From Neoechinorhynchus agilis (Eukaryota > Animalia > Acanthocephala), in NCBI GenBank assembly GCA_051530055.1, contig CM121342.1, positions 6,509,489 through 6,573,488 on the forward strand: DNA of 64,000 nucleotides, given 5' to 3'. Positions 7,666 to 37,667 of this stretch are shown in pieces. Below the pieces are notes generated by a model that did not search any database, was not told the origin of the DNA, and was given only the letters and a program-made list of their open reading frames with translations. Position 1 is the stretch's first letter, and every line of letters starts with the position of its first letter. Made by a program: the position numbers and the translations under genes.

Positions 7666-7756
7666 CCAGTATTTTCCGTCGTTCCGGGAGAGTCCGGCCG
7701 TTGAGAGAAGAATTTATTATTTTTCTAACGTCTAAAGCACTAAAATATATTGGATT

Positions 7757-9390: not shown

Positions 9391-9534
9391 GAAATGTGAG
9401 CTCTTTTTTCAACCTGAAAAGATCTTCAGAGCAAAAATAAGCTAATTTTTTTGACTTGTTTTTCTATACATGTTTTCTAAGAAACTTTATTTGTATACAA
9501 TTTATCTATGCATTGTTTACAACCTCTCCGCTCC

Positions 9535-10516: not shown

Positions 10517-13500
10517 TCACGAACCTGATGGTTCATCGGTTTGTACATTTTTTGTCACATTTAGTCGAGATTTCTCCATTGATGTATTTTTCTGTCTTTT
10601 AGCTTCTATTTTAGGCCAATAATCGTTGATAAAGGCTTCTCGTTGTTTATCGAATGCCTCCATAAGTTCTTCATAACCAAAAGACGTATTATCGGTTGTT
10701 GAAGCGGAACAAAACCAACAGACCGACAGTTGATCATAGAACTCCACGAGAGCAAATGCCAACGAAAGGGCTAAAGAGTCCACAAACCGACCTTTTGATG
10801 ACTCTTGATGTTTTTTAAGAGCTTCTTCAAAGTTCTGGAAATTATCTTCTCCTTTTATCCAGCTCTCAATTTTGGCGTGGTGTTCAATATCATTCTTGTT
10901 CAGAACGAGCAATATTGGTAGTTGCATTCGAAACATTATACTGCACGAATATAACATATTGGTCATGAATGTCATTGGATTTGAGCTCGATCGAGGGATA
11001 TCCGTTACGTATGCAATAATGGTAGGAAATGCTGATGCTAAGCATTCACATATTATTTGCCCCGAAGCGGACCATGTAAACGATTCTATTTGCCCCGGAG
11101 TATCTATTAAAACTATCGGACGAAATCCTCCTGTTGATACGCTGCATTTTTCACTTATAAAATCAATAACGGCACCGAAGTTCGTCGCAAACAGATTGAG
11201 CGAAGTCAATATAGCGCCGTTCGGACCGAGTTTGTATGTTTGCATCACTGTCTGATAGTTTATTTAGCAGTCATCGGAACTTCTCTAATCACAAGATTTT
11301 TAAAAACCACCCACTTCTCAAAAACTCTATCGTTCCAAATGGATTTTTAGTGATTTAAGACGAGATAAGAACGAGAAATAACCGTGAAAATCTTGCAATG
11401 ATTTCATTCGAATGGAAAAAGGAATTTATGAATTTTGTAAAATCTCAAAGGAAAACATTAAAGTAGAATTCAAATGCGAAGGAATTTTTAGGCGACAAGA
11501 ACGAGAAATAACCGTGAAAATCTTGCAATGATTTCATTCGAATGGAAAAAGGAATTTATGAATTTTTGTAAAATCTCAAAGGAAAACAATAAAGTAGAAT
11601 TCAAATGTGGAGGAATTTTTAGGCGACAAGAACGAGAAATAACCGTGAAAATCTTGCAAAGATTTCATTCGAATGGAAAAAAGGAGGAATTTATGAATTT
11701 TGTAAAATCTCAAAGGAAAACATTAAAGTAGAATTCAAATGTGAAGGAATTTTTAGGCGACAAGAACGAGAAATAACCGTGAAAATCTTGCAAAGATTTC
11801 ATTCGAATGGAAAAAGGAATTTATGAATTTTTGTAAAATCTCAAAGGAAAACATTAAAGTAGAATTCAAATGTGAAGGAATTTTTAGCGACAAGAACGAG
11901 AAATAACCGTGAAAATCTTGCAAAGATTTCATTCGAATGAAAAAAGGAGGAATTTATGAATTTTGTAAAATCTCAAAGGAAACATTAAAGTAGAATTCAA
12001 ATGTGAAGGAATTTTTAGGCGACAAGAACGAGAAATAACCGTGAAAATCTTGCAAAGATTTCATTCGAATGGAAAAAAGGAGGAATTTATGAATTTTGTA
12101 AAATCTCAAAGGAAAACAATAAAGTAGAATTCAAATGTGAAGGAATTTTTAGGCGACAAGAACGAGAAATAACCGTGAAAATCTTGCAATGATTTCATTC
12201 GAATGGAAAAAAGGAGGAATTTATGAATTTTTGTAAAATCTCAAAGGAAAACATTAAAGTAGAATTCAAATGTGAAGGAATTTTTAGGCGACAAGAACGA
12301 GAAATAACCGTGAAAATCTTGCAAAGATTTCATTCGAATGGAAAAAAGGAGGAATTTATGAATTTTTTAAAATCTCAAAGGAAAACATTAGTAGAATTCA
12401 AATGTGAAGGAATTTTTAGGCGACAAGAACGAGAAATAACCGTGAAAATCTTGCAATGATTTCATTCGAATGGAAAAAAGGAGGAATTTATGAATTTTTG
12501 TAAAATCTCAAAGGAAAACATTAAAGTAGAATTCAAATGTGAAGGAATTTTTAGGCGACAAGAACGAGAAATAACCGTGAAAATCTTGCAATGATTTCAT
12601 TCGAATGGAAAAAAGGAGGAATTTATGAATTTTGTAAAATCTAGGAAAACATTAAAGTAGAATTCAAATGTGAAGGAATTTTTAGGCGACAAGAACGAGA
12701 AATAACCGTGAAAATCTTGCAATGATTTCATTCGAATGGAAAAAAGGAGGAATTTATGAATTTTTGTAAAATCTCAAAGGAAAACAATAAAGTAGAATTC
12801 AAATGTGAAGGAATTTTTAGGCGACAAGAACGAGAAATAACCGTGAAAATCTTGCAATGATTTCATTCGAATGGAAAAAAGGAGGAATTTATGAATTTTT
12901 GTAAAATCTCAAAGGAAAACATTAAAGTAGAATTCAAATGTGAAGGAATTTTAGGCGACAAGAACGAGAAATAACCGTGAAAATCTTGCAAAGATTTCAT
13001 TCGAATGGAAAAAGGAATTTATGAATTTTTGTAAAATCTCAAAGGAAAACAATAAAGTAGAATTCAAATGTGAAGGAATTTTTAGGCGACAAGAACGAGA
13101 AATAACCGTGAAAATCTTGCAAAGATTTCATTCGAATGGAAAAAAGGAGGAATTTATGAATTTTTGTAAAATCTCAAAGGAAAACAATAAAGTAGAATTC
13201 AAATGTGAAGGAATTTTTAGGCGACAAGAACGAGAAATAACCCTCAAAATCTTGCAATGATTTCATTCGAATGGAAAAAAGGAGGAATTTATGAATTTTT
13301 GTAAAATCTCAAAGGAAAACATTAAAGTAGAATTCAAATGTGAAGGAATTTTTAGGCGACAAGAACGAGAAATAACCGTGAAAATCTTGCAAAGATTTCA
13401 TTCGAATGGAAAAAAGGAGGAATTTATGAATTTTTGTAAAATCTCAAAGGAAAACAATAAAGTAGAATTCAAATGTGAAGGAATTTTTAGGCGACAAGAA

Positions 13501-14359
13501 CGAGAAATAACCGTGAAAATCTTGCAAAGATTTCATTCGAATGGAAAAAAGGAGGAATTTATGAATTTTTTAAAATCTCAAAGGAAAACATTAAAGTAGA
13601 ATTCAAATGTGAAGGAATTTTTAGGCGACAAGAACGAGAAATAACCGTGAAAATCTTGCAAAGATTTCATTCGAATGGAAAAAGGAATTTATGAATTTTT
13701 GTAAAATCTCAAAGGAAAACATTAAAGTAGAATTCAAATGTGAAGGAAATGGTACCTCCCGAATACAATATATTCCAAATCTGTTACATTAGGGAGCGAA
13801 TGAATACGGTCGATCTTCAAACAAAACGTTCTTTATCGATCGAAGGGCAAAACAATAAATTTAATATTTTCTATCCAACGCTTAGCGGAAAAAATTAAAA
13901 AATAACTTTAGTTAAATCCGATTATTTTCGAAGAGGCATAAACAAGCAATTTAAGGAATGGTTAAAAAATCTTCAAATGAAGAAAAATACGATAAAATCA
14001 ACAAAATTGAATTCATATCGACAGAAAATCATTTTGACTTGTATGCGATGAAAAATAGTCGGCCAGTTAAAAATCGTTTTATTGTTTACGAATAATAAAA
14101 TGATTTTTAACCGGGCGAGTATGATGCATTCTCGTCCGAAGAATGCTTTTAAAGTATCCCGAATATCGAGATTAACATCGTATTGGAGCTGCAACACAGC
14201 CGGATCCAAGTTTATTGTAAAAACAGGCAATCCAAGTTCCTTTCGTTTTTTCCAAATCTTCCCAACAAAAGAAGTTTTTCCCGATCCAGCCATTCCGATC
14301 ACCACCACACACAACGGCGCTAAATTTATATCATTGGAATGTTCACTGTGATTGGACAT
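10517..14359 (-). CDS. GPN1: GPN-loop GTPase 1; exons 14359-14151 and 11261-10517 (317 aa) joined by a non-canonical intron
   Basis: GMAGSGKT, INLDPA, DIRDTL|NYQTVMQTYKLGPNGAILTSLNLF and DTPGQIESFTWSASG. Exon sum 954 nt is in frame. Confidence 0.92.
11262..14150 (-). other. Non-canonical intron AA...AT (2889 nt) with paired ends
   Basis: ACT TT|AAAAGCATTCTTCGGA...TCCGATGACTGCTAAAT|A AAC TAT restores DIRDTxNY. A TAAA repeat at the junction lets the boundary slide. AGCA/TGCT and TCGGA/TCCGA can pair. Confidence 0.72.
11365..13748. repeat. Tandem array, ~135-bp unit, ~17-18 copies, inside the GPN1 intron
   Basis: GAACGAGAAATAACCGTGAAAATCTTGC repeats; the ORF track shows a 45-codon periodicity. 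Confidence 0.97.
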
Positions 14360-14499
14360 TTCTAAAACAATGGGGTTTTTTAACAAAAAAATTGTGATTT
14401 ATATATATAGAGATTAAATCCTATATAAATATGGTTTTAATCTACATCAATAGTTTTTTTGAAAAAAGTATTTACCGATTAAAAGTCTAATTGGACTAA

Positions 14500-16494: not shown

Positions 16495-16620
16495 TCTTTT
16501 CGAAAATTGGCATTGAACTGAATGCTGCGAAATGCGAGATTTTAGTGATGAACATCGAAAAAATAACCATGAACCACTTTTAGAAACTGTACCCCGCGAT
16601 AACAGTACATTGAGGAGATT
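16495..16620 (+). mobile_element. Small CRE-like RT fragment
   Basis: [21 protein letters not shown] matches SKMGIELNSSKCELLLMNMDE of the element at 6347-6565. Confidence 0.65.
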
Positions 16621-16706
16621 CTCAATAAGAGGAAGTTGAGGAATAAATTTTTGTATGACTTTAGAAAATGCTTCAAAGACCGAATGATCGTACACAGAAC
16701 TTGAAA

Positions 16707-19150: not shown

Positions 19151-19265
19151 TGCTAACAAAACCCAAATCGAACGCGTTCAATTGTTTGTTTTTCGACAAC
19201 GTTACGGAAGAACAACACCGGAACAAGTGTTTTACAAAAGATTCGATTTTGGTTTCCGTTTAAAG

Positions 19266-19820
19266 ATGAGCTCAGGTCAGCACGGTTATCGGATGCGAGC
19301 CACGAATGAAATAAGCGATCCGGTGGCCCGTCGGTCTACGGTCCTTTTACAGAAGCAACTGCGGGACTTGCTCAAAGACCCTGATGCCGGGTTCTCGGCT
19401 GGATTAGCGAACGATGACGACATTTACGTTTGGAATGTAGTTGTGATTGGTCCACCTCAGACACCTTACGAGGGTGGATTTTTTAAAGCAGTTCTCCATT
19501 TCCCAGTGGATTATCCAATGCGGCCGCCTAAAATGACGTTTACCAGTGAAATATGGCATCCGAATATTGGTACGGACGGTAAAGTGTGCATTAGCATCCT
19601 CCATGAACCCGGCGATGACCAATTTGGATACGAAACCGCTTGTGAACGATGGCTACCCGTTCATACCGTAGAAACGATTCTTGTTTCGGTGATCAGCATG
19701 CTCTCTGATCCAAATGACGAAAGTCCGGCCAATGTAGATGCTGCGAAACAATTCAGGGACGATTATCAGGGATTTAAACGAAGGGTTCATGAATGCGTTC
19801 GAAAATCACAAGACTTCTGA
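19266..19820 (+). CDS. UBE2G1: Ubiquitin-conjugating enzyme E2 G (Ubc7 family), intronless
   Basis: LLQKQLRDL...GFSAGL, WHPNIGTDGKVCISILHEPGDDQFGYE (acidic insertion) and ERWLPVHTVETIL...SPANVDAA. First ATG taken as start. Confidence 0.93.
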   Translation: MSSGQHGYRMRATNEISDPVARRSTVLLQKQLRDLLKDPDAGFSAGLANDDDIYVWNVVVIGPPQTPYEGGFFKAVLHFPVDYPMRPPKMTFTSEIWHPNIGTDGKVCISILHEPGDDQFGYETACERWLPVHTVETILVSVISMLSDPNDESPANVDAAKQFRDDYQGFKRRVHECVRKSQDF

Positions 19821-19825
19821 AAAAA

Positions 19826-20184
19826 TTCGAGTAGAATATTTTTTTAAAGATATTACGAGCGAATGGTTCTTTGATTCCCCAAAAGTCGCTTTTCTAAAAT
19901 CGAGTAGAATATTTTTTTAAAGATATTACGAGCGAATGGTTCTTTGATTCCCCAAAAGTCGCTTTTCTAAAATCGAGTAGAATATTTTTTTAAAGATATT
20001 ACGAGCGAATGGTTCTTTGATTCCCCAAAAGTCGCTTTTCTAAAATCGAGTAGAATATTTTTTTTAAAGATATTACGAGCGAATGGTTCTTTGATTCCCC
20101 AAAAGTCGCTTTTCTAAAATCGAGTAGAATATTTTTTTAAAGATATTACGAGCGAATGGTTCTTTGATTCCCCAAAAGTCGCTT
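19826..20184. repeat. Tandem array, ~73-bp unit, 5 copies, directly after the UBE2G stop
   Basis: CGAGTAGAATATTTTTT...CCCCAAAAGTCGCTT at 19828, 19901, 19974 and onward. Confidence 0.95.
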
Positions 20185-20240
20185 CTAATTTCGATTTATA
20201 TTGAGTTGGGTAAAATACTCCCGTTTTCTCTCTTCGACAG

Positions 20241-20806
20241 ATAACGGACGAAACTCTAGAGACGATCGGTAAAGTGGGCAAGAATATCGAATGGCTGGTA
20301 AGTTTGAATATAATTTTTGGGCATACATCGATGCTTTTAGAATCTCTCGAGATGTGACCAGATTACTGATTCTGGAATACAAGCTCTTTGCTTTCGGCAC
20401 GAATTGCAATGCAATTTACGAGTTTTAGAGCTTGATAACTGTTCTCATGTAGACTTATTGAGTTTGTGATCATCACGGAGGATCGGCTGAATCACAAGTT
20501 CAATTGATATCTGATGAATCCTTAAAGACTCTCTTGAAATGTTTGAATTTGTGTCGTTTAGAAATGTTCGATTGTAGTCGAGTATCTCAAAAGGCTATCG
20601 ATGAATTCCGGATGGAAAGGCCGGATGTTATGCTTCATTCTTATTTTGTGTTCAGGAGTGAAAACATCGAAGACGAACCGGAGCGTCGATTTCTTAGAAG
20701 AAGAAGGAGAAGGCGGCACAATAATGAGAACGGCGAGAGACGTTGGTTGCGAGATATCGTGTTTCGAAGAACTGAACGAGTCGTTCAATGCTGTGCTATT
20801 GCTTAA
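20241..20806 (+). CDS. FBXL2/FBXL20-like LRR protein, 3' part only; exons 20241-20297, 20341-20450, 20509-20806
   Basis: ITDETLETIGKVGKNIEWL|NLSRCDQITDSGIQAL...LRVLELDNCSHV|SDESLKTLLKCLNLCRLEMFDCSRVSQKAI...HSYF aligns with the FBXL2/20 C-terminal LRR-CC repeats. No start codon found. Confidence 0.78.
20451..20508 (+). other. Non-canonical intron AG...AT (58 nt) with a 14-bp stem
   Basis: CAT GT|AGACTT ATTGAGTTTGTGAT...ATCACAAGTTCAAT TGAT|A TCT. The stem has 12 Watson-Crick and 2 G-U pairs; splicing here keeps the LRR Cys of LELDNC. Confidence 0.78.
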
Positions 20807-20906
20807 ATTAAAACTTAGTGACGATTTTGTCGTTTAAAAAAAAGAAATTTCTACTTTTAATTCAAAATGATTTTGGGCCTTCGATTATATCAAAGTGATT
20901 TCGTTG

Positions 20907-23900
20907 TTAGATCAGCAACGGCTTTATCATTCTAAGGAACTCTTGTTGATTCTCGGCATCCATTGACATGAACATTTTCATGAGTTTTCTAGACGAAGCA
21001 CTTCGAACAAACGTCAATATCCACACGTACGTAAAAGTGAACATTGCGTATTGGCAATCAAATCGATCCATAAATCCGCCATGACCGGGAATGGTATCGG
21101 AAAAATCCTTAATCTTAAACGCTCGTTTGAATCCACTGGCAAAAAATCCACCAAATGGTCCAATCAATGAAGCAAACAATGATAAAGCGATGGCGTGCAC
21201 TTGAAACGGGTATAAATCCACATGAAACATGTTGAGATATTTAAATATTAAAGGAAGTTCATAAGTTTGAAGCTGGAATAATCGACCGGGAGTACATTCG
21301 TCGCTGGTTTGAACGTCTTGAACTGGACATACGAGATAGTTGTACTGAGCCAAATGTCCACTTACAAAGAAACCAAGAATTAAAGTAATCAACGCACCGC
21401 CTATGAATCCTTCCCATGTCTTTTTAAAGCAATGAATCCTGTTGAAAACTACAATAACGATTTGGAGCTTATTTGGTTCGAAGTTTCCTCTTTAAATATT
21501 AAAATAGGCATTTGATCATCTTTAAAAAAAAGGATAACGTGTAAAACAACCTTTTTTTTCGTACTCGCCATAAAAAAAGGTCGATTTTTTAGCTTAGAAA
21601 AAGAGAATTCTTGTAATGAAGCAACAGTGCTTTTTCGGTTAATTAACGGGAAAAGACCAGAGTTTGTGTTTGGTTGCGCTAAACTCAACAATTAAGACGA
21701 CCCAAACAACCACGGGAACCATGTATCTTTGGATTCGTTCTGTTTGAGACTGTAACAGAACCAGACCCACTACAGCGGAGATCCCGGCGACCATGGACAA
21801 TCCCGAGGCTATTCTCTTCCCGAAACGAATTCTAAGACTTTCCTCACGAGAATATAACTTTTTAGTGTTATAATTTTTTTGGGAACCAAAAAAAACCTTA
21901 GATTTGTTGTCAATTTTTACAGAATCGATTTCTTTTCGGATTCCCGAAACGAATTCTAAGACTTTCCTCACGAGAATATAACTTTTTAGTGTTATAATTT
22001 TTTTGGGCACCAGAAAAAACCTTAGATTTGTTGTCAATTTTTACAGAATCGATTTCTTTTCGGATTCCCGAAACGAATTCTAAGACTTTCCTCAGGAGAA
22101 TATAAATTTTTAGTGTTATAATTTTTTTGGGCACCAGAAAAAACCTTAGATTTGTTGTCAATTTTTACAGAATCGATTTCTTTTCGGATTCCCGAAACGA
22201 ATTCTAAGACTTTCCTCAGGAGAATATAAATTTTTAGTGTTATAATTTTTTTGGGCACCAGAAAAAACCTTAAATTTGTTGTCAATTTTTACAGAATCGA
22301 TTTCTTTTCGGATTTCCGAAACGAATTCTAAGACTTTCCTCAGGAGAATATAACTTTTTAGTGTTATAATTTTTTTGGGCACCAGAAAAAACCTTAGATT
22401 TGTTGTCAATTTTACAGAATCGATTTCTTTTCGGATTTCCGCAACGAATTCTAGACTTTCCTCACGAGAATATAACTTTTTGTTATAATTTTTTTGGGCA
22501 CCAGAAAAAACCTTAGATTTGTCAATTTTCAGAATCGATTTCTTTTCGGATTTCCGCAACGAATTCTAAGACTTTCCTCACGAGAATATAACTTTTTGGT
22601 GTTATAATTTTTGGGCACCGAAAAAACCTTAATTTGTTGTCAATTTTTACAGAATCGATTTCTTTTCGGATTCCCGAAACGAATTTAAACTTTCCTCAGG
22701 AGAATATAACTTTTTAGTGTTATAATTTTTTGGGCACCAGAAACCTTAGATTTGTTGTCAATTTTTACAGAATCGATTTCTTTTCGGATTCCCGAAACGA
22801 ATTCTAAGACTTTCCTCAGGAGAATATAACTTTTTAGTGTTATAATTTTTTTGGGCACCAGAAAAAACCTTAGATTTGTTGTCAATTTTTACAGAATCGA
22901 TTTCTTTTCGGATTTCCGAAACGAATTCTAAGACTTTCCTCACGAGAATATAACTTTTTAGTGTTATAATTTTTTTGGGCACCAGAAAAAACCTTAGATT
23001 TGTTGTCAATTTTTACAGAATCGATTTCTTTTCGGATTTCCGCAACGAATTCTAAGACTTTCCTCACGAGAATATAACTTTTTGGTGTTATAATTTTTTT
23101 GGGAACCAGAAAAAACCTTAGATTTGTTGTCAATTTTTACAGAATCGATTTCTTTTCGGATTCCCGAAACGAATTCTAAGACTTTCCTCAGGAGAATATA
23201 AATTTTTAGTGTTATAATTTTTTTGGGCACCAGAAAAAACCTTAGATTTGTTGTCAATTTTTACAGAATCGATTTCTTTTCGGATTCCCGAAACGAATTC
23301 TAAACTTTCCTCACGAGAATATAATTTTTGTGTTATAATTTTTTTGGGACCAAAAACTTAATTTGTTGTCTTTTGTTTTTTTGGTTGGTTTAAGACTTTC
23401 CTAGGAGAATATAACTTTTTGTGTTATAATTTTTTTGGACCGAAAAAACCTTAATTTGTTGTCAATTTTTACAGAATGATTTCTTTTCGGATTTCCGCAA
23501 CGAATTCTAAGACTTTCCTCACGAGAATATAACTTTTTGGTGTTATAATTTTTTTGGGCACCAGAAAAAACCTTAGATTTGTTGTCAATTTTTACAGAAT
23601 CGATTTCTTTTCGGATTCCCGAAACGAATTCTAAGACTTTCCTCAGGAGAATATAACTTTTTAGTGTTATAATTTTTTTGGGCACCAGAAAAAACCTTAA
23701 ATTTGTTGTCAATTTTTACAGAATCGATTTCTTTTCGGATTCCCGAAACGAATTCTAAGACTTTCCTCAGGAGAATATAACTTTTTGGTGTTATAATTTT
23801 TTTTTTTTGTGTTTTTTTGTTGTTCTAAGACTTTCCTCAGAGAATATAATTTTTAGTGTTATAATTTTTTGGGCACCAGAAAAAACCTTAGATTTGTTGT

Positions 23901-25220
23901 CAATTTTTACAGAATCGATTTCTTTTCGGATTCCCGAAACGAATTCTAAGACTTTCCTCACGAGAATATAACTTTTTAGTGTTATAATTTTTTTGGGCAC
24001 CAGAAAAAACCTTAAATTTGTTGTCAATTTTTACAGAATCGATTTCTTTTCGGATTCCCGAAACGAATTCTAAGACTTTCCTCAGGAGAATATAACTTTT
24101 TGGTGTTATAATTTTTTTGGGCACCAGAAAAAACCTTAGATTTGTTGTCAATTTTTACAGAATCGATTTCTTTTCGGATTCCCGAAACGAATTCTAAGAC
24201 TTTCCTCAGGAGAATATAAATTTTTAGTGTTATAATTTTTTTGGGCACCAGAAAAAACCTTAAATTTGTTGTCAATTTTTACAGAATCGATTTCTTTTCG
24301 GATTCCCGAAACGAATTCTAAGACTTTCCTCAGGAGAAGATATTTTCATAGAAGCGAATACAAAAATGATGTTTAGATTTGTGAGAAGAAAAGCGATGGT
24401 ACTTTTTTTGATGGAAATTCTAGCTTTTTTTTCATTTCGGGAATTAGAATTGTTTTGATAAAAGAAAAAAAGGAGACGATGAGATCAAATGGGTTCATTG
24501 CAGTTGGCGACAACTTGATGAGTGGCGTTCGTCCGAAGAAAGATCCGCAAAAGTAAGCGAAAACATCATTGGAGATGATCATAAGAGCAGGAATGAGTAG
24601 CCAAATGATACCTTCTAGAAGACATCTCATGCAAAGATTGGACTGAATAACGATTAACATGAGTGAGACATGAGTAAGACTGAACAGGGACAATTGTTTC
24701 ATATAGAATCGTCGTTTTAGTTGAAGGACGAAAGTGACGAATCCAGCAGCGTAGAGAATGTGATGAACTCTTCTCATTTAACGGAGAAGATTTAATGAGA
24801 CGGCTCAGTTTTAAACGAAATCAGAGTGTGATAAGTAAGAAATGACTGCCCAAAGTCAGTTCTTGCGAGTAAAACACTGAAATGTTCAGTGAAGCTCTCA
24901 CCGAAAAAATAAACATTTGAAGCGAACAGAAAGTACCAGGAGAGAATCCGAAACAAAGGGAAATTGTTCGCTTGATAGACCGAGTGACCGATAGAGATTA
25001 TCTCATGGTAACATTTGATTTGAACGATCATTATGGCGGCAGCCAGTGCTACGGGACCTGCTTTTACACAAAATGCGAATCCAGCCATCATCGTCAATCC
25101 AAGAATCAAACGAATCTTGTAATTGCTCCAGCGGGATACTTTTGGTTGGTGGTGATTCGGTTTTTGATTGGTCGCTTTGGACCGATGACGCAGACCGGAA
25201 TTCGATTCGTCGCGTTTCAT
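20907..25220 (-). CDS. Phosphatidate cytidylyltransferase (CDP-DAG synthase); exons 25220-24813, 24759-24506, 21426-20907 (393 aa)
   Basis: QIKCYHEII, YHTLISF|ILYAAGF, NDVFAYFCGSFFGRTPLIKLSP|KKTWEGFIGG and [31 protein letters not shown]. CDS1 versus CDS2 cannot be resolved. Exon sum 1182 nt is in frame. Confidence 0.93.
21427..24505 (-). other. Non-canonical intron AA...TT (or AC...TT, shifted 1 nt), 3079 nt, with paired ends
   Basis: TCG CC|AACTGCAATGAACCC...GGATTCATTGCTT|T AAA AAG ACA TGG is required for SPKKTWEG. GCAATGAACCC pairs with GGATTCATTGC at 10 of 11 positions. Confidence 0.8.
21810..24340. repeat. Tandem array, ~124-bp unit, ~20 copies, inside CDS intron 2
   Basis: CCCGAAACGAATTCTAAGACTTTCCTC...GGGCACCAGAAAAAACCTTAG repeats; ORF starts are spaced 124 nt apart. 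Confidence 0.97.
24760..24812 (-). other. Non-canonical intron AA...AC (53 nt) with hairpin
   Basis: TCG TTT|AAAAC TGAGC CG TCTCATT...AATGAGA AGA GTTCA TCAC|ATT CTC TAC. Gives ISF-ILY, matching YHRFISFTLY of vertebrate CDS with no extra residues. Confidence 0.68.
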
Positions 25221-25689: not shown

Positions 25690-28352
25690 TAAGAAATTTT
25701 TGATCAGATTTTTTCATTATGACAAATGGAAGATCTACGCTTTAAAAAAAACAATATTTTAAATCCATTTTAGAAATTTTTGGTCAGATTTTTTCATTTT
25801 GACAAGTGGAAGATCCACGCTTTAAAAAAAACAATATTTTAAATCCATTTTAGAAATTTTTGATCAGATTTTTTCATTATGACAAGTGGAAGATCTACGT
25901 TAAAAAACCAATATTTTAAATCCATTTAAGAAATTTTTGATCAGATTTTTTCATTATGACAATGGAAGATCACGCTTAAAAAACAATATTTAAATCGATC
26001 AATTTTTTATTTGACAAGTGGAAGATCCACATTTAAAAAACAATATTTTAAATCCATTTAAGAAATTTTTGATCAGATTTTTTCATTTTGACAAGTGGAA
26101 GATCCACATTTAAAAAAACAATATTTTAAATCCATTTTAGAAATTTTTGATCAGATTTTTTCATTTTGACAAGTGGAAGATCCACATTTAAAAACAATAT
26201 TTTAAATCCATTTAAGAAATTTTTGATCAGATTTTTTCATTTTGACAAGTGGAAGATCCACATTAAAAAAACAATATTTTAAATCCATTTAAGAAATTTT
26301 TGATCAGATTTTTTCATTATGACAAATGGAAGATCCACATTTAAAACAATATTTTAAATCCATTTAAGAAATTTTTGATCAGATTTTTTCATTTTGACAA
26401 GTGGAAGATCCACATTTAAAAAAACAATATTTTAAATCCATTTAAGAAATTTTTGATCAGATTTTTTCATTTTGACAAGTGGAAGATCCACATTTAAAAA
26501 CAATATTTTAAATCCATTTTAGAAATTTTTGATCAGATTTTTTCATTATGACAAGTGGAAGATCCACATTTAAAAACAATATTTTAAATCCATTTAGAAA
26601 TTTTGATCAGATTTTTCATTTTGACAAGTGGAAGATCCACATTTAAAAACAATATTTTAAATCCATTTAGAAATTTTTGATCAGATTTTTTCATTTTGAC
26701 AAGTGGAAGATCCACTTAAAAAACAATATTTTAAATCCATTTAAGAAATTTTTGATCAGATTTTTTCATTTTGACAAGTGGAAGATCCACATTTAAAAAC
26801 AATATTTTAAATCCATTTTAGAAATTTTTGATCAGATTTTTTCATTATGACAAGTGGAAGATCCACATTTAAAAACAATATTTTAAATCCATTTAAGAAA
26901 TTTTTGATCAGATTTTTTCATTATGACAAGTGGAAGATCCACATTTAAAAACAATATTTTAAATCCATTTAAGAAATTTTTGATCAGATTTTTTCATTAT
27001 GACAAATGGAAGATCCACATTAAAAAACAATATTTTAAATCCATTTAAGAAATTTTTGATCAGATTTTTTCATTTTGACAAGTGGAAGATCCACATTTAA
27101 AAACAATATTTTAAATCCATTTTAGAAATTTTTGATCAGATTTTTTCATTTTGACAAGTGGAAGATCCACGTTTAAAAAACAATATTTTAAATCATTTAG
27201 AAATTTTTGATCAATTTTTTCATTATGACAATGGAAGATCCACATTAAAACAATATTTTAAATCCATTTAGAAATTTTTGATCAGATTTTTTCATTTTGA
27301 CAAGTGGAAGATCCACTTTAAAAAAACAATATTTTAAATCCATTTTAGAAATTTTTGATCAGATTTTTTCATTATGACAAATGGAAGATCCACATTTAAA
27401 AAAACAATATTTTAAATCCATTTTAGAAATTTTTGATCAGATTTTTTCATTTTGACAAGTGGAAGATCCACATTAAAAAAACAATATTTTAAATCCATTT
27501 TAGAAATTTTTGATCAGATTTTTTCATTATGACAAATGGAAGATCCACATTTAAAAAAACAATATTTTAAATCCATTTTAGAAATTTTTGATCAGATTTT
27601 TTCATTATGACAAGTGGAAGATCCACTTTAAAAAAACAATATTTTAAATCCATTTAAGAAATTTTTGATCAGATTTTTTCATTATGACAAATGGAAGATC
27701 CACATTTAAAAACAATATTTTAAATCCATTTAGAAATTTTTGATCAGATTTTTTCATTATGACAAGTGGAAGATCCACGTTTAAAAAAACAATATTTTAA
27801 ATCCATTTTAGAAATTTTTGATCAGATTTTTTCATTATGACAAGTGGAAGATCCACGCTTTAAAAAAACAATATTTTAAATCCATTTTAGAAATTTTTGA
27901 TCAGATTTTTTCATTTTGACAAGTGGAAGATCCACGTTTAAAAAAACAATATTTTAAATCCATTTAGAAATTTTTGATCAGATTTTTTCATTTGACAAAT
28001 GGAAGATCCACATTTAAAAAACAATATTTTAAATCCATTTGAGAAATTTTTGATCAGATTTTTTCATTTTGACAAGTGGAAGATCACGTTTAAAAAAACA
28101 ATATTTTAAATCCATTTTAGAAATTTTTGATCAGATTTTTTCATTATGACAAATGGAAGATCCACGCTTTAAAAAAACAATATTTTAAATCCATTTTAGA
28201 AATTTTTGATCAGATTTTTTCATTTTGACAAGTGGAAGATCTACGCTTTAAAAAAAACAATATTTTAAATCCATTTTAGAAATTTTTGATGAGATTTTTT
28301 CATTATGACAAGTGGAAGATCCACGCTTTAAAAAAACAATAATTTAAATCCA
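25690..28352. repeat. Tandem array, ~78-bp unit, ~34 copies
   Basis: AGAAATTTTTGATCAGATTTTTTCATT(A/T)TGACAAGTGGAAGATCCAC repeats. Confidence 0.97.
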
Positions 28353-29772
28353 TTGGATCTTAAATTAACCAATCTCTAAAAATAATAATAAGACTTTTTA
28401 TTCGGCCTACATTTCCGCAATGTTGAAAATGGCTCATTCGTCGTCATTTTCTGCCTCGTATTGCTGGCATCGAAAAGAAAAACACTGCCATTCTCCGTTT
28501 TTATTGTAAAAGTGAGTCAGAATTCCTCAATGTTTTCTCAGTAAATCCATTTTCGGAGTTGTTTTATGGAACCTTTAACTTATAAAATACAATCAAATCA
28601 CCGTCGCAGTTATTCTTTGACCGACAGCATTTCCTCACTGGATTGCGATGCTAATATTCTTGAATCCATAAAAAAAAGAATTGTTTTTCAACAAAAGTTC
28701 ATTAGTTGTAAATATCAAAAGCTTCTTCTCACGCATTTTCTAACTCTCTCGAGAACTTATTCTGTTTTGTAAATATCTAAACTATAAAATATATTTGGAA
28801 ATAGCACCAAAATTGTAAAATTAACGGTTAAAGCGACTTTTGTGGTCTACGAAAAATTCGATAAAAAATCATTGACTCCTACAAAGATAAGAAGACATTT
28901 TGAGAATTGAGTTATTGGCAATACCAATTTTTTTGTCGATATTGATTATCCGTTCAAATATGGATTTGTGAAACGTTTAGTTACTATTCCAGGAATTATG
29001 TTTCAATTGAGAAAACGCCGTTGACCGATAAATTTACCAAAATATTATCACAAAAAATGGAAATCATTTACTCGCCGAAAATCTCACAGCTAATATCAAA
29101 CTTCTTTAAATAGTTTTTTCTGTGCAGAATTTTAGAAATTTTAATCACCTTTCAGCGGTTAGCAATGCGATTCGCTCATGACTAAAAATCAAACTTACGA
29201 CATTCAAAGACAAAATCCACACCAAAAATTTATCCTTTTAATAAAAAAAATTACCGAAAATCTACAAATTTTTTTTAACAATATTAATAAATCTGATTCT
29301 TCAAAAATGTGAACGGCGAAACATCTTTAATGAAACCAAAAACGAAACAATGTTCGAAATCTGAACATGAACAAAACAATGAGCGAAAATCTGAAGATCC
29401 AAAGACGAAAACGTTTAAATGCGAACAACATTGAACCACGATGATTTTGATTGATTTTAATATAAAAAACCCATGAATTCCGAGTTAATAATAAAAAAAT
29501 TGCCGAATCACAGAAATGTGCACGTATTGACGAATTGTAAATTTTTAAAAAACATTTTCTTACAAAGCAACAAAAACCTTATTTGTGATTGAGATTTACT
29601 TTACGCCCAAAAACCTTACAAGACGCATTTTCCCATTTTCAGAAAAGATTAAAATCATCAATCCTTTTTTTGCTCAAAATAATCGACTGCTTCAACGAAA
29701 AAAAAACTAATGATTTTTTTGTGTTCTAAAAAAAATCAAGAAATGAACACTTTCAAAACAAGGCGAGCTCGT

Positions 29773-30339
29773 TCATTTGCTGCCCATTCGATTGATGAGC
29801 TTTACAGCATCATCAAGAATGTTTCTAAGTTCTTGAACTTCAATATAAAGTTGATCAATGATCATGTGAAGCCGTTCATTTTCTTCGAGTGTCTTTTCAA
29901 GAGCGATTCGTCTTTGTTCTGCCATTTGAGCCCAATATTCATGGCTCGCTTCATTGCAGGTGAGCATATCGAAAACTTCTTCTTTTGACATTTCGGACAC
30001 TCGTTTCCGTTCCCGGACGCTGACCAGAGTCTGGACCGACTTTTCCTCGGTCTCATTCACTTCATCGATGATTGGTTTGAACACTTTATCATTTTCCAAT
30101 GATGATTGTTGTTGACGAAGATGATCGCAGTTATCGACGCCGGAGAAAATCCGAGTGACACTCCGGCGAAGATGTTTGCTTCTCCATTTAGACGAAGCCG
30201 CCGTCGAATGATTCGAAGGGGCCAAGTTCTCTTTATCGAATCCACTTTTTTGAACAGCATCCAGAAGATCGACCCCAACGGAATGAGATCTACTCGAAGA
30301 AAGACGCTTGAATATATTAAAACGGCGTTGAGATGGCAT
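29773..30339 (-). CDS. GMNN: Geminin-family coiled-coil protein, copy A
   Basis: ASHEYWAQMAEQRRIALEKTLEENERLH matches the geminin coiled coil (YWKEVAEKRRKAL..AL.ENEKLH). The symbol is family-level; MCIDAS/GMNC are not excluded. Confidence 0.78.
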   Translation of the reverse strand: MPSQRRFNIFKRLSSSRSHSVGVDLLDAVQKSGFDKENLAPSNHSTAASSKWRSKHLRRSVTRIFSGVDNCDHLRQQQSSLENDKVFKPIIDEVNETEEKSVQTLVSVRERKRVSEMSKEEVFDMLTCNEASHEYWAQMAEQRRIALEKTLEENERLHMIIDQLYIEVQELRNILDDAVKLINRMGSK

Positions 30340-30928
30340 ATCTGGAAAAGGAGATGTGGAGCCGTTGCCGTTGCTCGGTTAAAGGAGGTGCGGGCGCGCG
30401 CGGTCACGTGCGGTAACGCGACCAAAACGCGTGACGTCAAACGCGATCACGCGCTGCAAATGGCCAAAACGATTTGAATCGCTGTGTCAGTTTAAAGTTC
30501 CAATTTTGAGTCGAAATTTAAATTAAAGGACGATTTAAAATTTAAAAGAGGAAGGGTTTAAAACTCTGGCAATACTGCAAGCATTCGGGCGACAATTAAG
30601 GACGACGAAACAAAAAAATTGATCGATTGTTCAAAATTGAAGTTTAAAAACGATAGGCCCGCGATTGAACACTCGTCTTACGATTCTTGCTTCACGGATT
30701 ATCAATCGATCAATTATTTCCAGAGTTTTAAACCCTTCCTCTTTCATCCATTGATTGGAAATTGCTTTTTAATCAAAGTAAAAGACTTAAAATAATCGTT
30801 TTGGCCATTTGCAGCGCGTGATCGCGTTTGACGTCACGCGTTTTGGTCGCGTTACCGCACGTGACCGCGCGCGCCCGCACCTCCTTTAACCGAGCAACGG
30901 CAACGGCTCCACATCTCCTTTTCCAGAT

Positions 30929-31495
30929 ATGCCATCTCAACGCCGTTTTAATATATTCAAGCGTCTTTCTTCGAGTAGATCTCATTCCGTTGGGGTCGAT
31001 CTTCTGGATGCTGTTCAAAAAAGTGGATTCGATAAAGAGAACTTGGCCCCTTCGAATCATTCGACGGCGGCTTCGTCTAAATGGAGAAGCAAACATCTTC
31101 GCCGGAGTGTCACTCGGATTTTCTCCGGCGTCGATAACTGCGATCATCTTCGTCAACAACAATCATCATTGGAAAATGATAAAGTGTTCAAACCAATCAT
31201 CGATGAAGTGAATGAGACCGAGGAAAAGTCGGTCCAGACTCTGGTCAGCGTCCGGGAACGGAAACGAGTGTCCGAAATGTCAAAAGAAGAAGTTTTCGAT
31301 ATGCTCACCTGCAATGAAGCGAGCCATGAATATTGGGCTCAAATGGCAGAACAAAGACGAATCGCTCTTGAAAAGACACTCGAAGAAAATGAACGGCTTC
31401 ACATGATCATTGATCAACTTTATATTGAAGTTCAAGAACTTAGAAACATTCTTGATGATGCTGTAAAGCTCATCAATCGAATGGGCAGCAAATGA
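30929..31495 (+). CDS. GMNN: Geminin-family coiled-coil protein, copy B (same 188-aa translation)
   Basis: Translation identical to copy A; divergent orientation. Confidence 0.78.
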   Translation: MPSQRRFNIFKRLSSSRSHSVGVDLLDAVQKSGFDKENLAPSNHSTAASSKWRSKHLRRSVTRIFSGVDNCDHLRQQQSSLENDKVFKPIIDEVNETEEKSVQTLVSVRERKRVSEMSKEEVFDMLTCNEASHEYWAQMAEQRRIALEKTLEENERLHMIIDQLYIEVQELRNILDDAVKLINRMGSK

Positions 31496-33084
31496 ACGAG
31501 CTCGCCTTGTTTTGAAAGTGTTCATTTCTTGATTTTTTTAGAACACAAAAAAATCATTAGTTTTTTTTTCGTTGAAGCAGTCGATTATTTTGAGCAAAAA
31601 ATTTTGCCGCAACTGCCGATCAAATTATTAAATTTGTGAGAATAATTAATATTTGCAAGATATTGCGAGTAATAATCGTCAAATTCGTTTTTTATCTCCA
31701 TAAATTTGAGCTTTTTAAGTTGCATCTAAAAAATAATCTGCCCAGATTTATTTCGGTATTTAAAGCGTTTTAAGATTCATTGCTCATTTTATTCTTCTGA
31801 ATTAAAAAAAATTTCCGAAATAAAATGGCAGATAATATTACAGAAGCAGCGAGTTTATAGATAACGCTGATTTTTTTATCGAATGATTTGTCCGAAAAAA
31901 TTGTTCAATTTGAAATAATATATACACAAAAGCTAAATAAACTAATTGTTCATATAAAAAATACCAGATTTTAAATTATTTGCAATACAAGAGACAAATG
32001 GCGATTTCTTAACAAAATGCTCGAAAAACCCTTTTTTTTGACGTATTCCAAATTCACGGTTTAAAAATCATCAAGTATAAAGAATAAAAAGAAAGTTCGA
32101 ATCTTTTAATTTGACACAAAGAACGAGCAATTATATTCTCGTATTTCTAAGAACTCGATTTTTAAATGCTTCAAATAAAAGTATCCGATAATAAAAATCA
32201 AGTATTATTTTGAGCGAAAGAAAATCGAATTATTTAAATATAATTTTGCGCACATTTTTATTTTTGGCGGTTTGATTTTTAATTCACATTTTTGTCTCAT
32301 TCTGTCATCAAATTTTTCTCATTTAATTGTAGACGTAGTTTGCACATTGAACGGTGGATCCTCTATTTCTCGCTTCTCGTTTTTATTGAACATTTTTAAA
32401 ATTTATTGTTATAAGATTCAAAGAATTGCCATTTAGAACCACAACGTTCCTAATGGGCACGAGTCTTTCATTAGCCGCCTCTATAATAAAAATCCATTTC
32501 ATTTTTCAGATGAACCGCGAAGAAACGATTCATTGTGGTCGATATCGATAAAATGATCGTTCGGCTAAATCAACGTCCTCGGCATTCACGAAAAAAAATC
32601 GTCCGGGCAACTTTTAAAACTCAAAAAACTCGCCATTGGATGCTTTTATTAATGTGATCAAAGAAATGAGAGATATTTTGATAGAAATACTCCATGGAAA
32701 CGTTATCCTATCAGTAATCCAAAATCCGTAAATTTTTGGTCTCATTGTGCTCATTGGAATTATTATTAATGTTGCAAAATCCGCGTATCGAATCTTATAT
32801 TTTATTCTTGCCATCATGAGGAGATTTCAATGGTTCAGTCGTATTGCACTTTTTATCATTGGGTCTAAATCGAATCTTAAAAACCAATCAACCTTCCTAA
32901 TAATATCCATAAATAAAAAAATCAAATACGATAGATCATTCGGCAGTTAATATGTATCATTTCATTCCCAAGAAGACAATACGTCTTTTTCCAAACGCTC
33001 GATCAATTCGCAATTTCAAATAACGTTATTTTTCAAGCTTTTTATTAAACTGCGTAATTGGAAATAAAATTGTTGTTTTGACAG

Positions 33085-33459
33085 TCAGCCATCTTTTGTG
33101 CTCAAATCTATAATATTTGATGTCCTTCCTTCAGGCATCGCAAAGTTCTCGGCAGCGACTAATTCTGATATCGTTCGGATGTTCGCATCTGAGCGATTTC
33201 CAACGAAGTACAGACAATTTGGAGTTGCGGTCAATTGTAGTCGAATATTTTGAAAAATCAACTGACTTATCAAAGACTCGAAACTATGCTCTCGATTGGA
33301 GGATTTGCACTTTTTGTTGCCATATTGATAATTTATTTACCTGAGACAAAACTCCATACAATTTCTGAAGTTTCTGATATGAAGGGGCTCGGACAATGTG
33401 CAAGAGAAACGTTTTGTAGGATCCGGAGGAAGCCAAAAGATAAGCCGGCAATGGAATGA
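33085..33459 (+). CDS. SLC22/MFS-like transporter, C-terminal fragment; upstream exons not resolved
   Basis: GIAKFSAATNSDIVRMFASERFPTKYRQFGVAV (E.FPT..R..G.G motif) and, in another frame, IIYLPETK. The two parts need an intron or frameshift near 33239-33282. Confidence 0.55.
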
Positions 33460-34775: not shown

Positions 34776-35172
<397 letters not shown>

Positions 35173-35311
35173 ATTGTTATCGTTGTTGTTAGCATTATTA
35201 TTACATGCACAACAATAATGATTTCGACCAATCAAAATCATTATTGTTGTGCATGTAATTTTTTTGGACGAATCAAAATAATTCGTTTCCTTCAAATGTC
35301 CACAACTTTAG

Positions 35312-36163
35312 ATGGCGTACTCTAAGTTCATAGAAACGTTCATATGGTTCAAAGTGTACTATGTTTTGTTTATGATATTAGTTGGATTAATATGCCACCA
35401 AAGCCGAACACGGTCGTTCGTGATGTTCCACGTTAAGATGTTCTTCTACTTATTCTTCACAGCTTCTATTTCACCTTTCTTAGTGCTTTTATCACTCAGA
35501 AATATAGGCGACCCGATGAACATTGAAAGTGTAAGTCGGATTCTTCGTGTATTCTACCGTCAGTTTTTTGGATTACGAGTGAACGTAACGGGATCAGACG
35601 AAGGCCGGGATCTTCTTCTTGGTCCAAACAAGAAACCATTCATCGTTGCAGCCAATCACCAGTCGGGCATTGATTTCATTACAATGAACGAAGTGCATCC
35701 ACTGAACTGTACAGCACTTGTTAAAAAGTCATTAATGTACACGACTGGTCCTTTCGGAATCTTGGGTTATGTTTGTGGAGTTCAGTTTATTTCGAGAGGC
35801 GATTACAAGGCTGTAAAAAGCCGAATGGCGAAAATCACGAAGAATATTCGGGAAAAGGGATGGAGAATTTGGATATTTCCAGAAGGCAGCAGAAATGTCG
35901 ATGGAGGAATGATGTCGTTTAAAATTGGAGCGTTTCGATTGGCCGTTGAAGCTGACGTGCCCATCATTCCAGTTGTGATTTCTAACCTTAATGGTATATT
36001 TAATTACAATGAAAAGTATTGGGTTCCGGGTGAATTAGAAGTTCGAATTCTTGATCCTATTCAACCAAACGAATGTGGCTCAGATGCTGCGATTCTAGCG
36101 GAGGAGACCAGGAAGAGGATGATGGACGTATTTAACACTCTGAAAACGAATCCAGATCTCTAA
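35312..36163 (+). CDS. 1-acyl-sn-glycerol-3-phosphate acyltransferase (AGPAT1/2-like), intronless
   Basis: PlsC motifs ANHQSGID, FISR, IFPEGSR and VPIIPV; FKIGAFRLAVEADVP. Confidence 0.92.
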   Translation: MAYSKFIETFIWFKVYYVLFMILVGLICHQSRTRSFVMFHVKMFFYLFFTASISPFLVLLSLRNIGDPMNIESVSRILRVFYRQFFGLRVNVTGSDEGRDLLLGPNKKPFIVAANHQSGIDFITMNEVHPLNCTALVKKSLMYTTGPFGILGYVCGVQFISRGDYKAVKSRMAKITKNIREKGWRIWIFPEGSRNVDGGMMSFKIGAFRLAVEADVPIIPVVISNLNGIFNYNEKYWVPGELEVRILDPIQPNECGSDAAILAEETRKRMMDVFNTLKTNPDL

Positions 36164-36309
36164 GGTCACCACGGTAAACCTACAAAAATTATCGGCTATT
36201 TTTTTAATGTTGATGGGTGCTTTCTCTAGTCTTATGGAATTCTTTTACTGCTTTATGAATGGTATAGGAAAGAGTGATTTTAGAGGGAGAAAAATGTGTG
36301 GGGCAATGA

Positions 36310-36865
36310 GTCAATGTGCCTCATTCTCGCTTCCAAGGGAAGAAGAGAATTTTTTTGAAATTCTGACGCCGCCATAAATTTCATGACACATTTGCTCACG
36401 AGCCCAAGTTTTCACTTCCCGACGATATTGTCGCATTTCTCACTTTAAAATCGTGATCTCTCTCATAAACAAAATTTTTACAATTTTCTTACATAAATCC
36501 TGAAGCTGGAGGAATGGTCTACTTTTCACAAAACTTTAAAGATTAAAGCACGATATCGTTATAGTTTTTTATCAACAAAGATTTGGAGGATTATTAGTCA
36601 ATGTGCTTTACGCTCGTTTCTAAGGGAAGAAAATTCTTTTTTTGAAATTCTGACCGAACAATAAATTCTTGGATTTTTACAATGAGCTCAAGTTTTCACT
36701 TCCCGACGATATTGTTGCATTTCTCACTTTAAAATCGTGATCTCTCTCATAAACAAAATTTTTACAATTTTCTTACATAAATCCTGAGGCTGGAGGAATG
36801 GTCTACTTTTCACAAAACTTTAAAGATTAAAGCACGATATCGTTATAGTTTTTTTTTATCAACAA
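36310..36865. repeat. Direct duplication of ~290 bp (2 copies)
   Basis: CAAGTTTTCACTTCCCGACGATATTGT...GCACGATATCGTTATAG occurs at ~36405 and ~36688. Confidence 0.85.
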
Positions 36866-36882
36866 CACCTTAAAATTAGAAA

Positions 36883-37667
36883 CTATTCGGACTCTACTGT
36901 AGTGAGAGCCGGCGTCTCTTTTTGGACGACATTGAACCGTCGTCTTTTACGTTTAAGTTGAGACCTTCCTGATTTGGCTGCCACAACAGTGGGTGTTTGT
37001 GGGAGTCTTCTGGTCAATCGTTGGAAATTCCTTAGTTCGGTTTTCCTGATAGCCATTCGGATCTTGGACATTTTCAATCGTAAATGAAACACAATCACGG
37101 ACATGGCTGTTAGAGTCACGATAATGACTGCGCTGGCAACAATGGCTGCCGCAGTGCTAACAATTTGAAATTTGATCCAACATACAAGAGCGAGATCAAT
37201 CAGAAACAGAAATAATCCCAGGAAAGTGCTTAGAATCCAAGCAATGTCCACATAGACATCGGCAGCCTCGAACGCTTTATCCGACATGAATTCAATTCGT
37301 TCAGTCGAAGTTTCATCGGATGGAATGAAATCGACGGATGCTAGAACCATTGTGGATATCATTAAAGCGACTACGTGGACTCCTACGAGAAGAGCAGTTA
37401 GGAATGAATGTGGACCGTGAGTCTAAATTAGAAAAACGCTTCCTAGTAGGTTCACGGTCTTGGTTAGGCGATAAAAACAGGTTGGTAAGAAGGAGACTTT
37501 TTATCGGTTTCGTAGGAATCGAGGGACATTTCAACCATTGTAACCATCGCGAACCCGGCCAAAAGAGCTGATGTCCGGTTAACCGCTTTTAGTTTTGACC
37601 GTTTTAGGAAAAATTTCCTCAATAAGACATCCACGGTCGGATCATGCGGATTTGAAGGTGATTCCAT
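36883..37667 (-). CDS. ORAI: Orai CRAC channel subunit; exons 37667-37466 and 37409-36883 (242 aa)
   Basis: [25 protein letters not shown] (TM1 with pore Glu), FIAY|[19 protein letters not shown] (TM2), [25 protein letters not shown] (TM3) and a TM4. Exon sum 729 nt is in frame. Confidence 0.92.
37410..37465 (-). other. Non-canonical intron AA...AC (56 nt) with a perfect 8-bp terminal stem
   Basis: GCC T|AACCAA GACCGTGA...TCACGGTC CAC|AT TCA. Retention leaves an in-frame TAA and a frameshift. Confidence 0.8.

Follow-up and report, generated by a model that had tools for sequence, protein, structure and literature searches.

Introns with paired ends and without GT-AG termini: a candidate second intron class in the acanthocephalan Neoechinorhynchus agilis

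Interruption of conserved genes

Five intervening sequences whose favoured ends are not GT-AG interrupt four genes in a 64-kb stretch of the genome of the eoacanthocephalan Neoechinorhynchus agilis (Syndermata). The stretch, termed the window, lies at ~6.51-6.57 Mb of CM121342.1 in assembly GCA_051530055.1, and all positions are counted from its first nucleotide. The host is identified by the open reading frame (ORF) of the second GPN1 exon, which is 100% identical to 'hypothetical protein ACOME3_006179 [Neoechinorhynchus agilis]'. The genes concerned encode GPN1, CDP-diacylglycerol synthase (CDS, interrupted twice), Orai and an FBXL-like fragment, the last being the weakest case. All five inserts are present where a first-pass annotation, made from the DNA letters alone, had placed them, and their lengths range from 53 to 3079 nt. 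That annotation had proposed a second class of introns coexisting with canonical ones. The comparison presented here agrees with this proposal, as the inserts have neither GT-AG termini nor a polypyrimidine tract and their ends are paired. With a probability of about 0.5, they are real intervening sequences of a lineage-specific second class, which would be removed from pre-mRNA most likely by a spliceosome that tolerates divergent termini.

GPN1, encoded on the minus strand, is split by an insert of 2889 nt with the ends AA..AT (11262..14150). Exon 1 (14151..14359) extends from the Met to DIRDTL, includes the GMAGSGKT P-loop and ends with ...GAT ACT TT, and exon 2 (10517..11261) starts with AAC TAT CAG (NYQ) immediately 3' of an in-frame TAA. 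The joined product reads LDIRDTLN|YQTVMQTYKLGPNG. At DIRDTLN|YQTVM it aligns without gaps to five homologues and retains an invariant Tyr. The junction may slide across AAA, and its predicted 40-mer is CTCGATATTCGGGATACTTTAAACTATCAGACAGTGATGC. Exon 1 is absent from the public annotation, whose GPN1 model begins after the intron and thus lacks the P-loop.

In CDS, also on the minus strand, exons 1 and 2 (25220..24813 and 24759..24505) encode 221 conserved residues that are absent from the public annotation, and exon 3 (20907..21425) runs from KKTWEGFIGG... to the stop, with only its last 107 codons annotated. Intron 1 (24760..24812; 53 nt, AA..AC) has complementary arms at 24795-24807 and 24764-24777. 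Its removal gives the junction LISF|ILYAAGF (predicted 40-mer ATCACACTCTGATTTCGTTTATTCTCTACGCTGCTGGATT), across which seven metazoan CDS proteins align without gaps. Intron 2 (21426..24504; 3079 nt, AC..TT or AA..TT) has arms at 24492-24501 and 21429-21439 and interrupts the invariant SP|KKTWEG motif, whose conservation extends to the bacterial CdsA structure. This junction (predicted 40-mer CACTCATCAAGTTGTCGCCAAAAAAGACATGGGAAGGATT) is likewise gap-free against the seven metazoan proteins.

The Orai intron (37410..37465, minus strand; 56 nt, AA..AC) carries the stem GACCGTGA/TCACGGTC at positions 37452-37459 and 37413-37420, a perfect helix of 8 bp. Exon 1 (37466..37667) encodes the first transmembrane segment (TM1) and the start of TM2 and ends with ...PVFIA and the first base of a Tyr codon. 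It is absent from the public annotation, and reading on in frame meets a stop. Exon 2 (36883..37409) is represented publicly by a 159-aa ORF only, which begins at an internal Met and has no TM1. The sequence VFIA|YS at the start of TM2 agrees with the hydrophobic LLIAFS of the 10 diverse Orai proteins compared, whose consensus is (L/V)L(I/V)(A/I)(F/Y)S, and the non-canonical model (predicted 40-mer CCAACCTGTTTTTATCGCCTATTCATTCCTAACTGCTCTT) fits every column.

Alternatively there might be no special class, with the short cases using nearby GT-AG or GC-AG sites in divergent proteins, or the genes being pseudogenes or assembly artefacts. In-frame GT-AG options do exist for Orai (56 nt), CDS intron 1 (44 or 47 nt) and the FBXL fragment (58 or 37 nt), as do GC-AG options for GPN1 and CDS intron 2. 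However, the invariant Tyr of GPN1 is lost with its best canonical option (GC..AG), and the GC-AG options for CDS intron 2 lose the invariant Lys-Lys or Ser-Pro. For CDS intron 1 the GT-AG options, with a product such as ...LISRVHHILY..., add two or three residues where eight metazoan sequences have no indel, and a conserved aromatic residue is lost. The GT-AG alternative of the same length in Orai would read ...YQPTHGPHSF... and places THGPHS at the start of TM2, so that five hydrophobic residues become THGPH. Moreover, the GT donors of Orai (GTTTTT), CDS intron 1 (GTTTAA) and the same-length FBXL alternative (GTTCTC) all lack the G at +5 that is found in 7/7 canonical donors of the window. 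Thus, in GPN1, at both CDS sites and in Orai, every in-frame GT/GC-AG or AT-AC alternative deletes invariant residues or inserts residues at places without an indel in any homologue, and homology forces the non-GT-AG junctions. The three short inserts (58, 53 and 56 nt in FBXL, CDS intron 1 and Orai) are no multiples of 3, and each introduces an in-frame stop at the junction or within about six codons.

Some near-perfect palindromes are present in the assembly and could be artefacts, but the stems of the inserts are imperfect and have unique loops, unlike fold-back read artefacts. Against pseudogenes, the conserved frames of the exons on both sides of the inserts are intact, and no intact GPN1 or CDS paralogue was found among the annotated N. 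agilis proteins. The public annotation, generated with BRAKER and guided by RNA sequencing (RNA-seq), cuts short or skips exons beside each of these introns. GPN1 exon 1, Orai exon 1 and CDS exons 1-2 are uncalled and the nearby GT-AG options, including those of Orai and CDS, are unused. Since RNA-seq-guided models skip them, these options appear too weakly supported for use, and an explanation by ordinary splice sites or defective genes is considered improbable.

It fits best for the FBXL fragment. The candidate intron (20451..20508, plus strand; 58 nt, AG..AT) has arms at 20457-20470 and 20491-20504, and its removal yields LELDNCSHVSDESL within a 103-residue gap-free alignment to human FBXL2 (predicted 40-mer CTTGATAACTGTTCTCATGTATCTGATGAATCCTTAAAGA). 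A GT-AG intron of the same 58 nt (20441-20498) yields LELDNFQLISDESL with equal spacing. The FBXL2/20-like sequence of the window (19266-20806) comprises only the last three leucine-rich repeats and a CaaX-like end, so that most repeats are missing here. No F-box was found anywhere in the window with an FBXL20 query, a result that is a lead only. The public record merges the fragment with an upstream UBE2G-like gene into one 313-aa protein, which must span the region via a canonical intron; eight canonical solutions fit this model and a reconstruction was not possible. Judged from sequence homology, the FBXL case is ambiguous, and GPN1, the two CDS sites and Orai are solid. The non-GT-AG ends that the first-pass annotation had assigned to all five inserts are therefore upheld by gap-free homology at these four sites and are weaker in FBXL, where the GT-AG alternative exists.

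Terminal pairing and sequence composition of the two classes

The five inserts, with FBXL counted among them, were compared to seven GT-AG introns of the same window that were set by homology or strong consensus. These comparators are the three eIF2-alpha introns (519-567, 759-4273 and 4628-4677, within 519..4677) and FBXL intron 1 (20298..20340; GTAAGT..TTTTAG, 43 nt) on the plus strand, and introns of SERINC (50827..49937), SET8 (53023..52889) and an MS4A-like gene (intron 2, 54743..54697) on the minus strand. Duplex energies were computed between the first and the last 22 nt of each intron. They range from -13.4 to -16.0 kcal/mol in the five non-canonical introns and from -2.7 to -8.3 kcal/mol in the seven canonical ones, without overlap. 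Against shuffled ends, a control that the first-pass annotation had suggested and that was applied here to the window introns, pairing of the non-canonical ends gave p values of 0.001-0.007 compared to 0.15-0.92 for the canonical ends. The earlier impression by eye that canonical ends are unpaired is thus borne out in numbers. Compared with random segments of equal length from this palindrome-rich window, the five p values are 0.0185, 0.0165, 0.0063, 0.0055 and 0.0027, and their Fisher combination is ~5e-7 by our own calculation. The pyrimidine fraction at -20..-3 is 0.33-0.56 in the non-canonical and 0.61-0.83 in the canonical introns, again without overlap, and none of the five non-canonical introns has a polypyrimidine tract.

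Tandem arrays are found in long introns of both classes. A 135-bp array occupies the interior of the GPN1 intron (11367-13748) and a 124-bp array that of CDS intron 2 (21817-24342). As the 3.5-kb eIF2-alpha intron 759-4273, which is clearly GT-AG and has unpaired ends, also contains one (216-bp unit), such arrays do not define the non-canonical class.

Anatomy of the helix and the junctions

In all five introns the stem begins at +4 to +7 and finishes at -4 to -5, which matches the placement near both ends described by the first-pass annotation. The GPN1 core stem (+4..+16 / -17..-5) is paired at 11 of 13 positions, with the 5' arm AGCATTCTTCGGA at 14135..14147 (minus strand) facing 11266-11278. 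This helix runs on through both splice sites into the exon flanks, which is not so in Orai and CDS intron 1. The FBXL stem (+7..+20 / -18..-5) comprises 14 pairs including two G-U pairs, that of CDS intron 1 (+6..+18 / -18..-5) is interrupted, that of CDS intron 2 spans +4..+13 / -14..-4, and the perfect Orai stem spans +7..+14 / -11..-4. The unpaired spacers measure 3-6 nt on the 5' side and 3-4 nt on the 3' side. As the folds are read here, a single internal loop of 3-6 by 3-4 nt contains both splice sites, with predicted cleavage at U|A or C|A. The five stem sequences are unrelated to one another, in line with the earlier statement that structure and not sequence is shared.

Such a geometry would suit the main rival explanation, a spliceosome-independent route in which an endonuclease cleaves at Y|A on both strands of the internal loop and an RtcB-type ligase joins the exons and circularises the intron. 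The succession of spacer, helix and spacer resembles that of euglenid nonconventional introns, as do the purine at the start of the 3' exon (A in 5/5), the missing polypyrimidine tract and the span of lengths from 53 nt to 3 kb. The almost constant 3' spacer of 3-4 nt and the fact that the stems have structure alone in common also argue for a helix-guided process. However, the euglenid signature 5'-N3-CDG...CH'G-N5-6|R(exon) (Milanowski et al.; PMC12501133; PMC11282704) is present in 0/5 introns. The 5' spacer ranges from 3 to 6 nt, neither a bulge-helix-bulge nor an IRE1-type motif can be drawn, and the pairing shows no strand asymmetry. No animal is known to process comparable mRNA introns by this route. 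Removal of the inserts by this route is therefore doubtful, and it is unlikely that in N. agilis, and perhaps in other eoacanthocephalans, about one third of the introns are removed by a helix-guided endonuclease and a ligase without the spliceosome. If true, this would be a case of convergence on euglenid nonconventional splicing, and no earlier pathway of its kind would be known for ordinary mRNA introns in an animal.

The first and last intron bases are A...C in two and A...U in three cases, and the downstream exon starts with A in all five. The pattern T|AR...AY|A put forward in the first-pass annotation fits 4/5 introns in its own register. With a one-base shift of the register, the last two bases of the upstream exon are TA in 4/5, and those of the insert are TA in 3/5 and CA in 2/5. 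This resemblance to a TA target is suggestive, not significant. It would be compatible with removal at the DNA level, in which TA-bounded transposon-like inserts are cut precisely from somatic DNA as in ciliates, and so would the inverted-repeat ends and the lineage-specific occurrence of the inserts. Yet the inverted repeats begin 2-5 nt inside the TA, an exact TA...TA is found in 2/5 only, with one mismatch in the other three, and the whole-worm assembly carries the inserts as the sole haplotype observed here. We know of no animal with precise elimination of short intragenic sequences, and this explanation is very improbable. Translational bypassing was considered as well and rejected for want of matching take-off and landing codons, and because two of the inserts are 3 kb long and the genes are nuclear.

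Origin and removal of the inserts

In Pomphorhynchus laevis both GPN1 and CDS are encoded by one uninterrupted ORF each and are intronless. The three introns at these sites are therefore regarded as lineage-specific. Unrelated palindromes or foldback elements, 60-200 nt long, are numerous in the non-coding DNA of the window (e.g. 39444-39647, 50337-50525, 43466-43672, 60972-61079 and 35200-35259), and 106 inverted-repeat pairs within 90 nt were counted in the window. The palindrome at 50367-50495 gave a match to an Rfam microRNA (miRNA) precursor below threshold. Because pairing shows no sense-strand excess and such palindromes are numerous in non-coding DNA, insertion of the foldback type is suggested. 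The inserts are probably foldback DNA, or palindromic DNA resembling miniature inverted-repeat transposable elements (MITEs), placed into coding exons of N. agilis. A single repeat link was found for any of the five non-canonical introns: an 82-nt palindrome in the GPN1 intron (14048-14129) shares a unit of ~35-70 nt with a 140-bp tandem array at 59951-60326. When the intron ends were compared with the window by BLAST, they matched only themselves.

Removal of the inserts from RNA is suggested by the intact frames of the flanking exons, the missing intact paralogues among annotated proteins, the gaps in the RNA-seq-guided models and the completeness values given in the N. agilis genome paper. 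There, the transcriptome outscores the genome in benchmarking universal single-copy orthologues (BUSCO), with 71.0 vs 58.4% for the eukaryota set and 54.9 vs 47.1% for the metazoa set. This gap fits transcripts that are more intact than the gene models. Introns are not mentioned in that paper.

The following course of events is proposed. Palindromic DNA of the foldback or MITE-like type would have entered coding exons in the N. agilis lineage. The inserts would be removed at Y|A...Y|A, with the 5' junction 3-6 nt before and the 3' junction 3-4 nt after the helix formed by the intron ends, by a spliceosome tolerating non-GT-AG termini, and the terminal helix may keep the two splice sites together over 50 nt or 3 kb. 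A spliceosome is favoured on account of the terminal bases, A at the start and C or U at the end, and of the AR..AY ends of 4/5 introns, a combination also seen in AG/AC and AG/AT introns of Fritillaria borealis. The latter are the dominant non-canonical classes of that species and have been assigned to the U2-type spliceosome (Henriet et al. 2019; PMC13326754; PMC11282704).

Several observations weigh against this proposal. The sample consists of five cases from a single 64-kb window, and one of them, FBXL, is a C-terminal fragment with a GT-AG alternative of the same length. Apart from A at +1 and a pyrimidine at -1 no common motif was found, the junctions slide by 1-4 nt, and ordinary recognition by U1 and U2AF is hard to picture for introns that have no GT, AG or polypyrimidine tract. 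The YAY triplet flanking the Fritillaria introns is present upstream of 0/5 5' sites and at 2/5 3' ends. No repeat family or clear target-site duplication ties the five introns to a transposon. Excision from RNA, the position of the junctions to the nucleotide, the machinery involved and a role for the helix are inferences. Finally, pairing is without strand bias, the sense duplex being stronger in three introns and the antisense duplex in two, and the antisense strand of the Orai intron shows a longer, decayed palindrome. Since sense and antisense strands are equivalent in this respect and the window is rich in unrelated palindromes, pairing could be inherited and not selected. The stems may thus be relics of inserted foldback DNA and not the splice-site selector proposed in the first-pass annotation.

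Gene content of the window

The window is AT-rich and compact and harbors genes for eIF2-alpha, ISCU, GPN1, a UBE2G-like E2, the C-terminal FBXL2/20-like fragment, CDS, geminin (two copies), AGPAT, Orai, SAHH, SERINC, SET8 and an MS4A-like protein, together with decayed retrotransposon fragments. The majority of genes are intronless. Approximately 13 introns were counted, of which four or five, i.e. about a third, lack standard splicing signals. The ORF inventory of the window revealed no further conserved split genes.

Two loci besides the five inserts show unusual splice sites. Intron 1 of the MS4A-like gene (54880-54990, minus strand) has a strong acceptor, TTATTTTTAG, that is in phase only with non-GT donors such as T|AGTTAT; GT options require a weaker acceptor and have no G at +5. 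It may be a hybrid or a further non-canonical intron and was left ambiguous. In SET8 (53275-53325, minus strand) two ORFs are split by a single in-frame TAG, which only one GT-AG intron (48 nt) with the weak donor GTCCTC can remove, and the upstream intron is ambiguous.

Fifteen tandem arrays, 0.1-3 kb long and each with a unit of its own (55-460 bp), occupy long introns and intergenic DNA (823-4068, 11367-13748, 21817-24342, 25692-28354, 44126-46254, 55714-58449 and others). A near-perfect inverted duplication at 29666-31601 consists of 809-bp arms with 99.9% identity and a 319-bp spacer. It holds two identical 188-aa geminin genes and may be real or an assembly fold-back. The C-terminus of an SLC22/MFS-type transporter remains at 33068-33456, with a frame shift near 33245 and upstream exons not found, and probably represents either a pseudogene or a homopolymer error in the assembly. 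Decayed non-long-terminal-repeat (non-LTR) retrotransposon fragments of one family (5300-7400, 9500-10000, 38150-39250 and 61800-64000) carry the motif ...HRCRCG...HGL.C... at the C-terminus. No match in the protein collection was obtained with a protein query based on these fragments. An Rfam scan of the window found nothing at gathering thresholds, small nuclear RNA genes included, and permissive settings gave only two sub-threshold hairpin-like miRNA look-alikes.

Other public gene models of the window also deviate from the reconstruction. The eIF2-alpha model (383-5010) is cut into two genes at the 3.5-kb canonical intron, the GPN1 (10517-11245) and ISCU (7384-8215) models extend into retrotransposon-derived sequence, and the SAHH model (40453-43413, 642 aa) appears to include an upstream 296-bp tandem array.

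Novelty and implications

Full-text literature searches, in which the N. agilis genome paper was included, turned up no description of non-canonical introns for Acanthocephala, Rotifera or Syndermata. The first-pass annotation had reasoned that the system would be independent and probably undescribed if the host were not a fritillariid. As the host is an acanthocephalan and no earlier description was found, both parts of this reasoning hold. If RNA data confirm the introns, abundant non-GT-AG introns would have arisen independently in this protostome parasite, whose genome measures 46 Mb. Some of the core-gene loss reported for acanthocephalans may then be an annotation artefact, and conclusions about gene loss and drug targets would have to be revisited. 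N. agilis RNA-seq data (PRJNA1223661) and a Trinity transcriptome (Zenodo 10.5281/zenodo.17199078) are already public.

Comparison with known intron systems

U12-type AT-AC introns are characterized by the 5' sequence ATATCC and the branch site TCCTTAAC. The five 5' ends read AAAAGC, AGACTT, AAAACT, ACTGCA and AACCAA, and an assignment to this type was rejected. Splicing of the tRNA type depends on two 3-nt bulges 4 bp apart, and that of the IRE1 type (XBP1/HAC1) on cleavage after G in two 7-nt loops. Neither motif was recognized on reading the folds, for which no dedicated motif search was run.

Introner elements, known from Micromonas, Aureococcus and dinoflagellates including Amoebophrya and Polarella, occur as many near-identical copies with target-site duplications and carry or co-opt GT/GC-AG sites. 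Like introners, the N. agilis introns appear to derive from short inserted elements with inverted-repeat ends at lineage-specific sites. Other copies of the intron ends are absent from the 64-kb window, although the genome elsewhere may hold some, and neither a consistent duplication nor GT-AG was found.

With euglenid nonconventional introns the inserts share non-GT-AG borders, paired ends that bring the splice sites together and short unpaired spacers flanking the helix. Further common features are the missing polypyrimidine tract, sliding junctions, a purine at the start of the 3' exon, lengths from tens to thousands of nucleotides and coexistence with conventional introns. For the euglenid class, a spliceosome-independent cut-and-ligate route has been proposed, not proven (PMC12501133; PMC11282704). 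The N. agilis introns differ in that the triplet at +4..+6 (AGC, CTT, ACT, GCA and CAA) conforms to CDG in 0/5, each stem has its own sequence and they occur in an animal. Their 3' spacer measures 3-4 nt instead of the euglenid 5-6 nt, and their 5' spacer 3-6 nt instead of 3 nt.

The closest parallel among animals is found in F. borealis, where 95% of introns are non-canonical and a flanking YAY triplet represents a target-site duplication (PMC13326754; PMC11282704). Both hosts are animals with compact genomes in which the unusual introns coexist with GT-AG introns, occupy lineage-specific positions and possess terminal inverted repeats. A start with A-purine and an end with A-pyrimidine is common to the Fritillaria introns and 4/5 of the N. 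agilis introns. The polypyrimidine tract is deficient in both, being weak or interrupted in the Fritillaria AC class. However, the 5' dinucleotide in N. agilis is mainly AA and not AG. The termini are AA..AT, AG..AT and twice AA..AC, so that AG starts only one intron, and CDS intron 2 ends with TT. The upstream triplets TTT, TGT, TTT, CCA/GCC and CCT include no YAY, and among the last three intron bases (AAT, GAT, CAC, TTT and CAC) YAY occurs in 2/5. In addition, no repeat family was detected for the N. agilis introns within the window, and only about one third of its introns are non-canonical. The defining signature of neither the Fritillaria nor the euglenid class is thus present. Fritillaria belongs to Chordata whereas N. 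agilis is a member of Spiralia, and the inserts would constitute a variant of known intron types in a new, unrelated phylum. If RNA confirms their removal, N. agilis would provide, after Fritillaria, the second animal system for studying how splice sites are located without GT, AG or a polypyrimidine tract.

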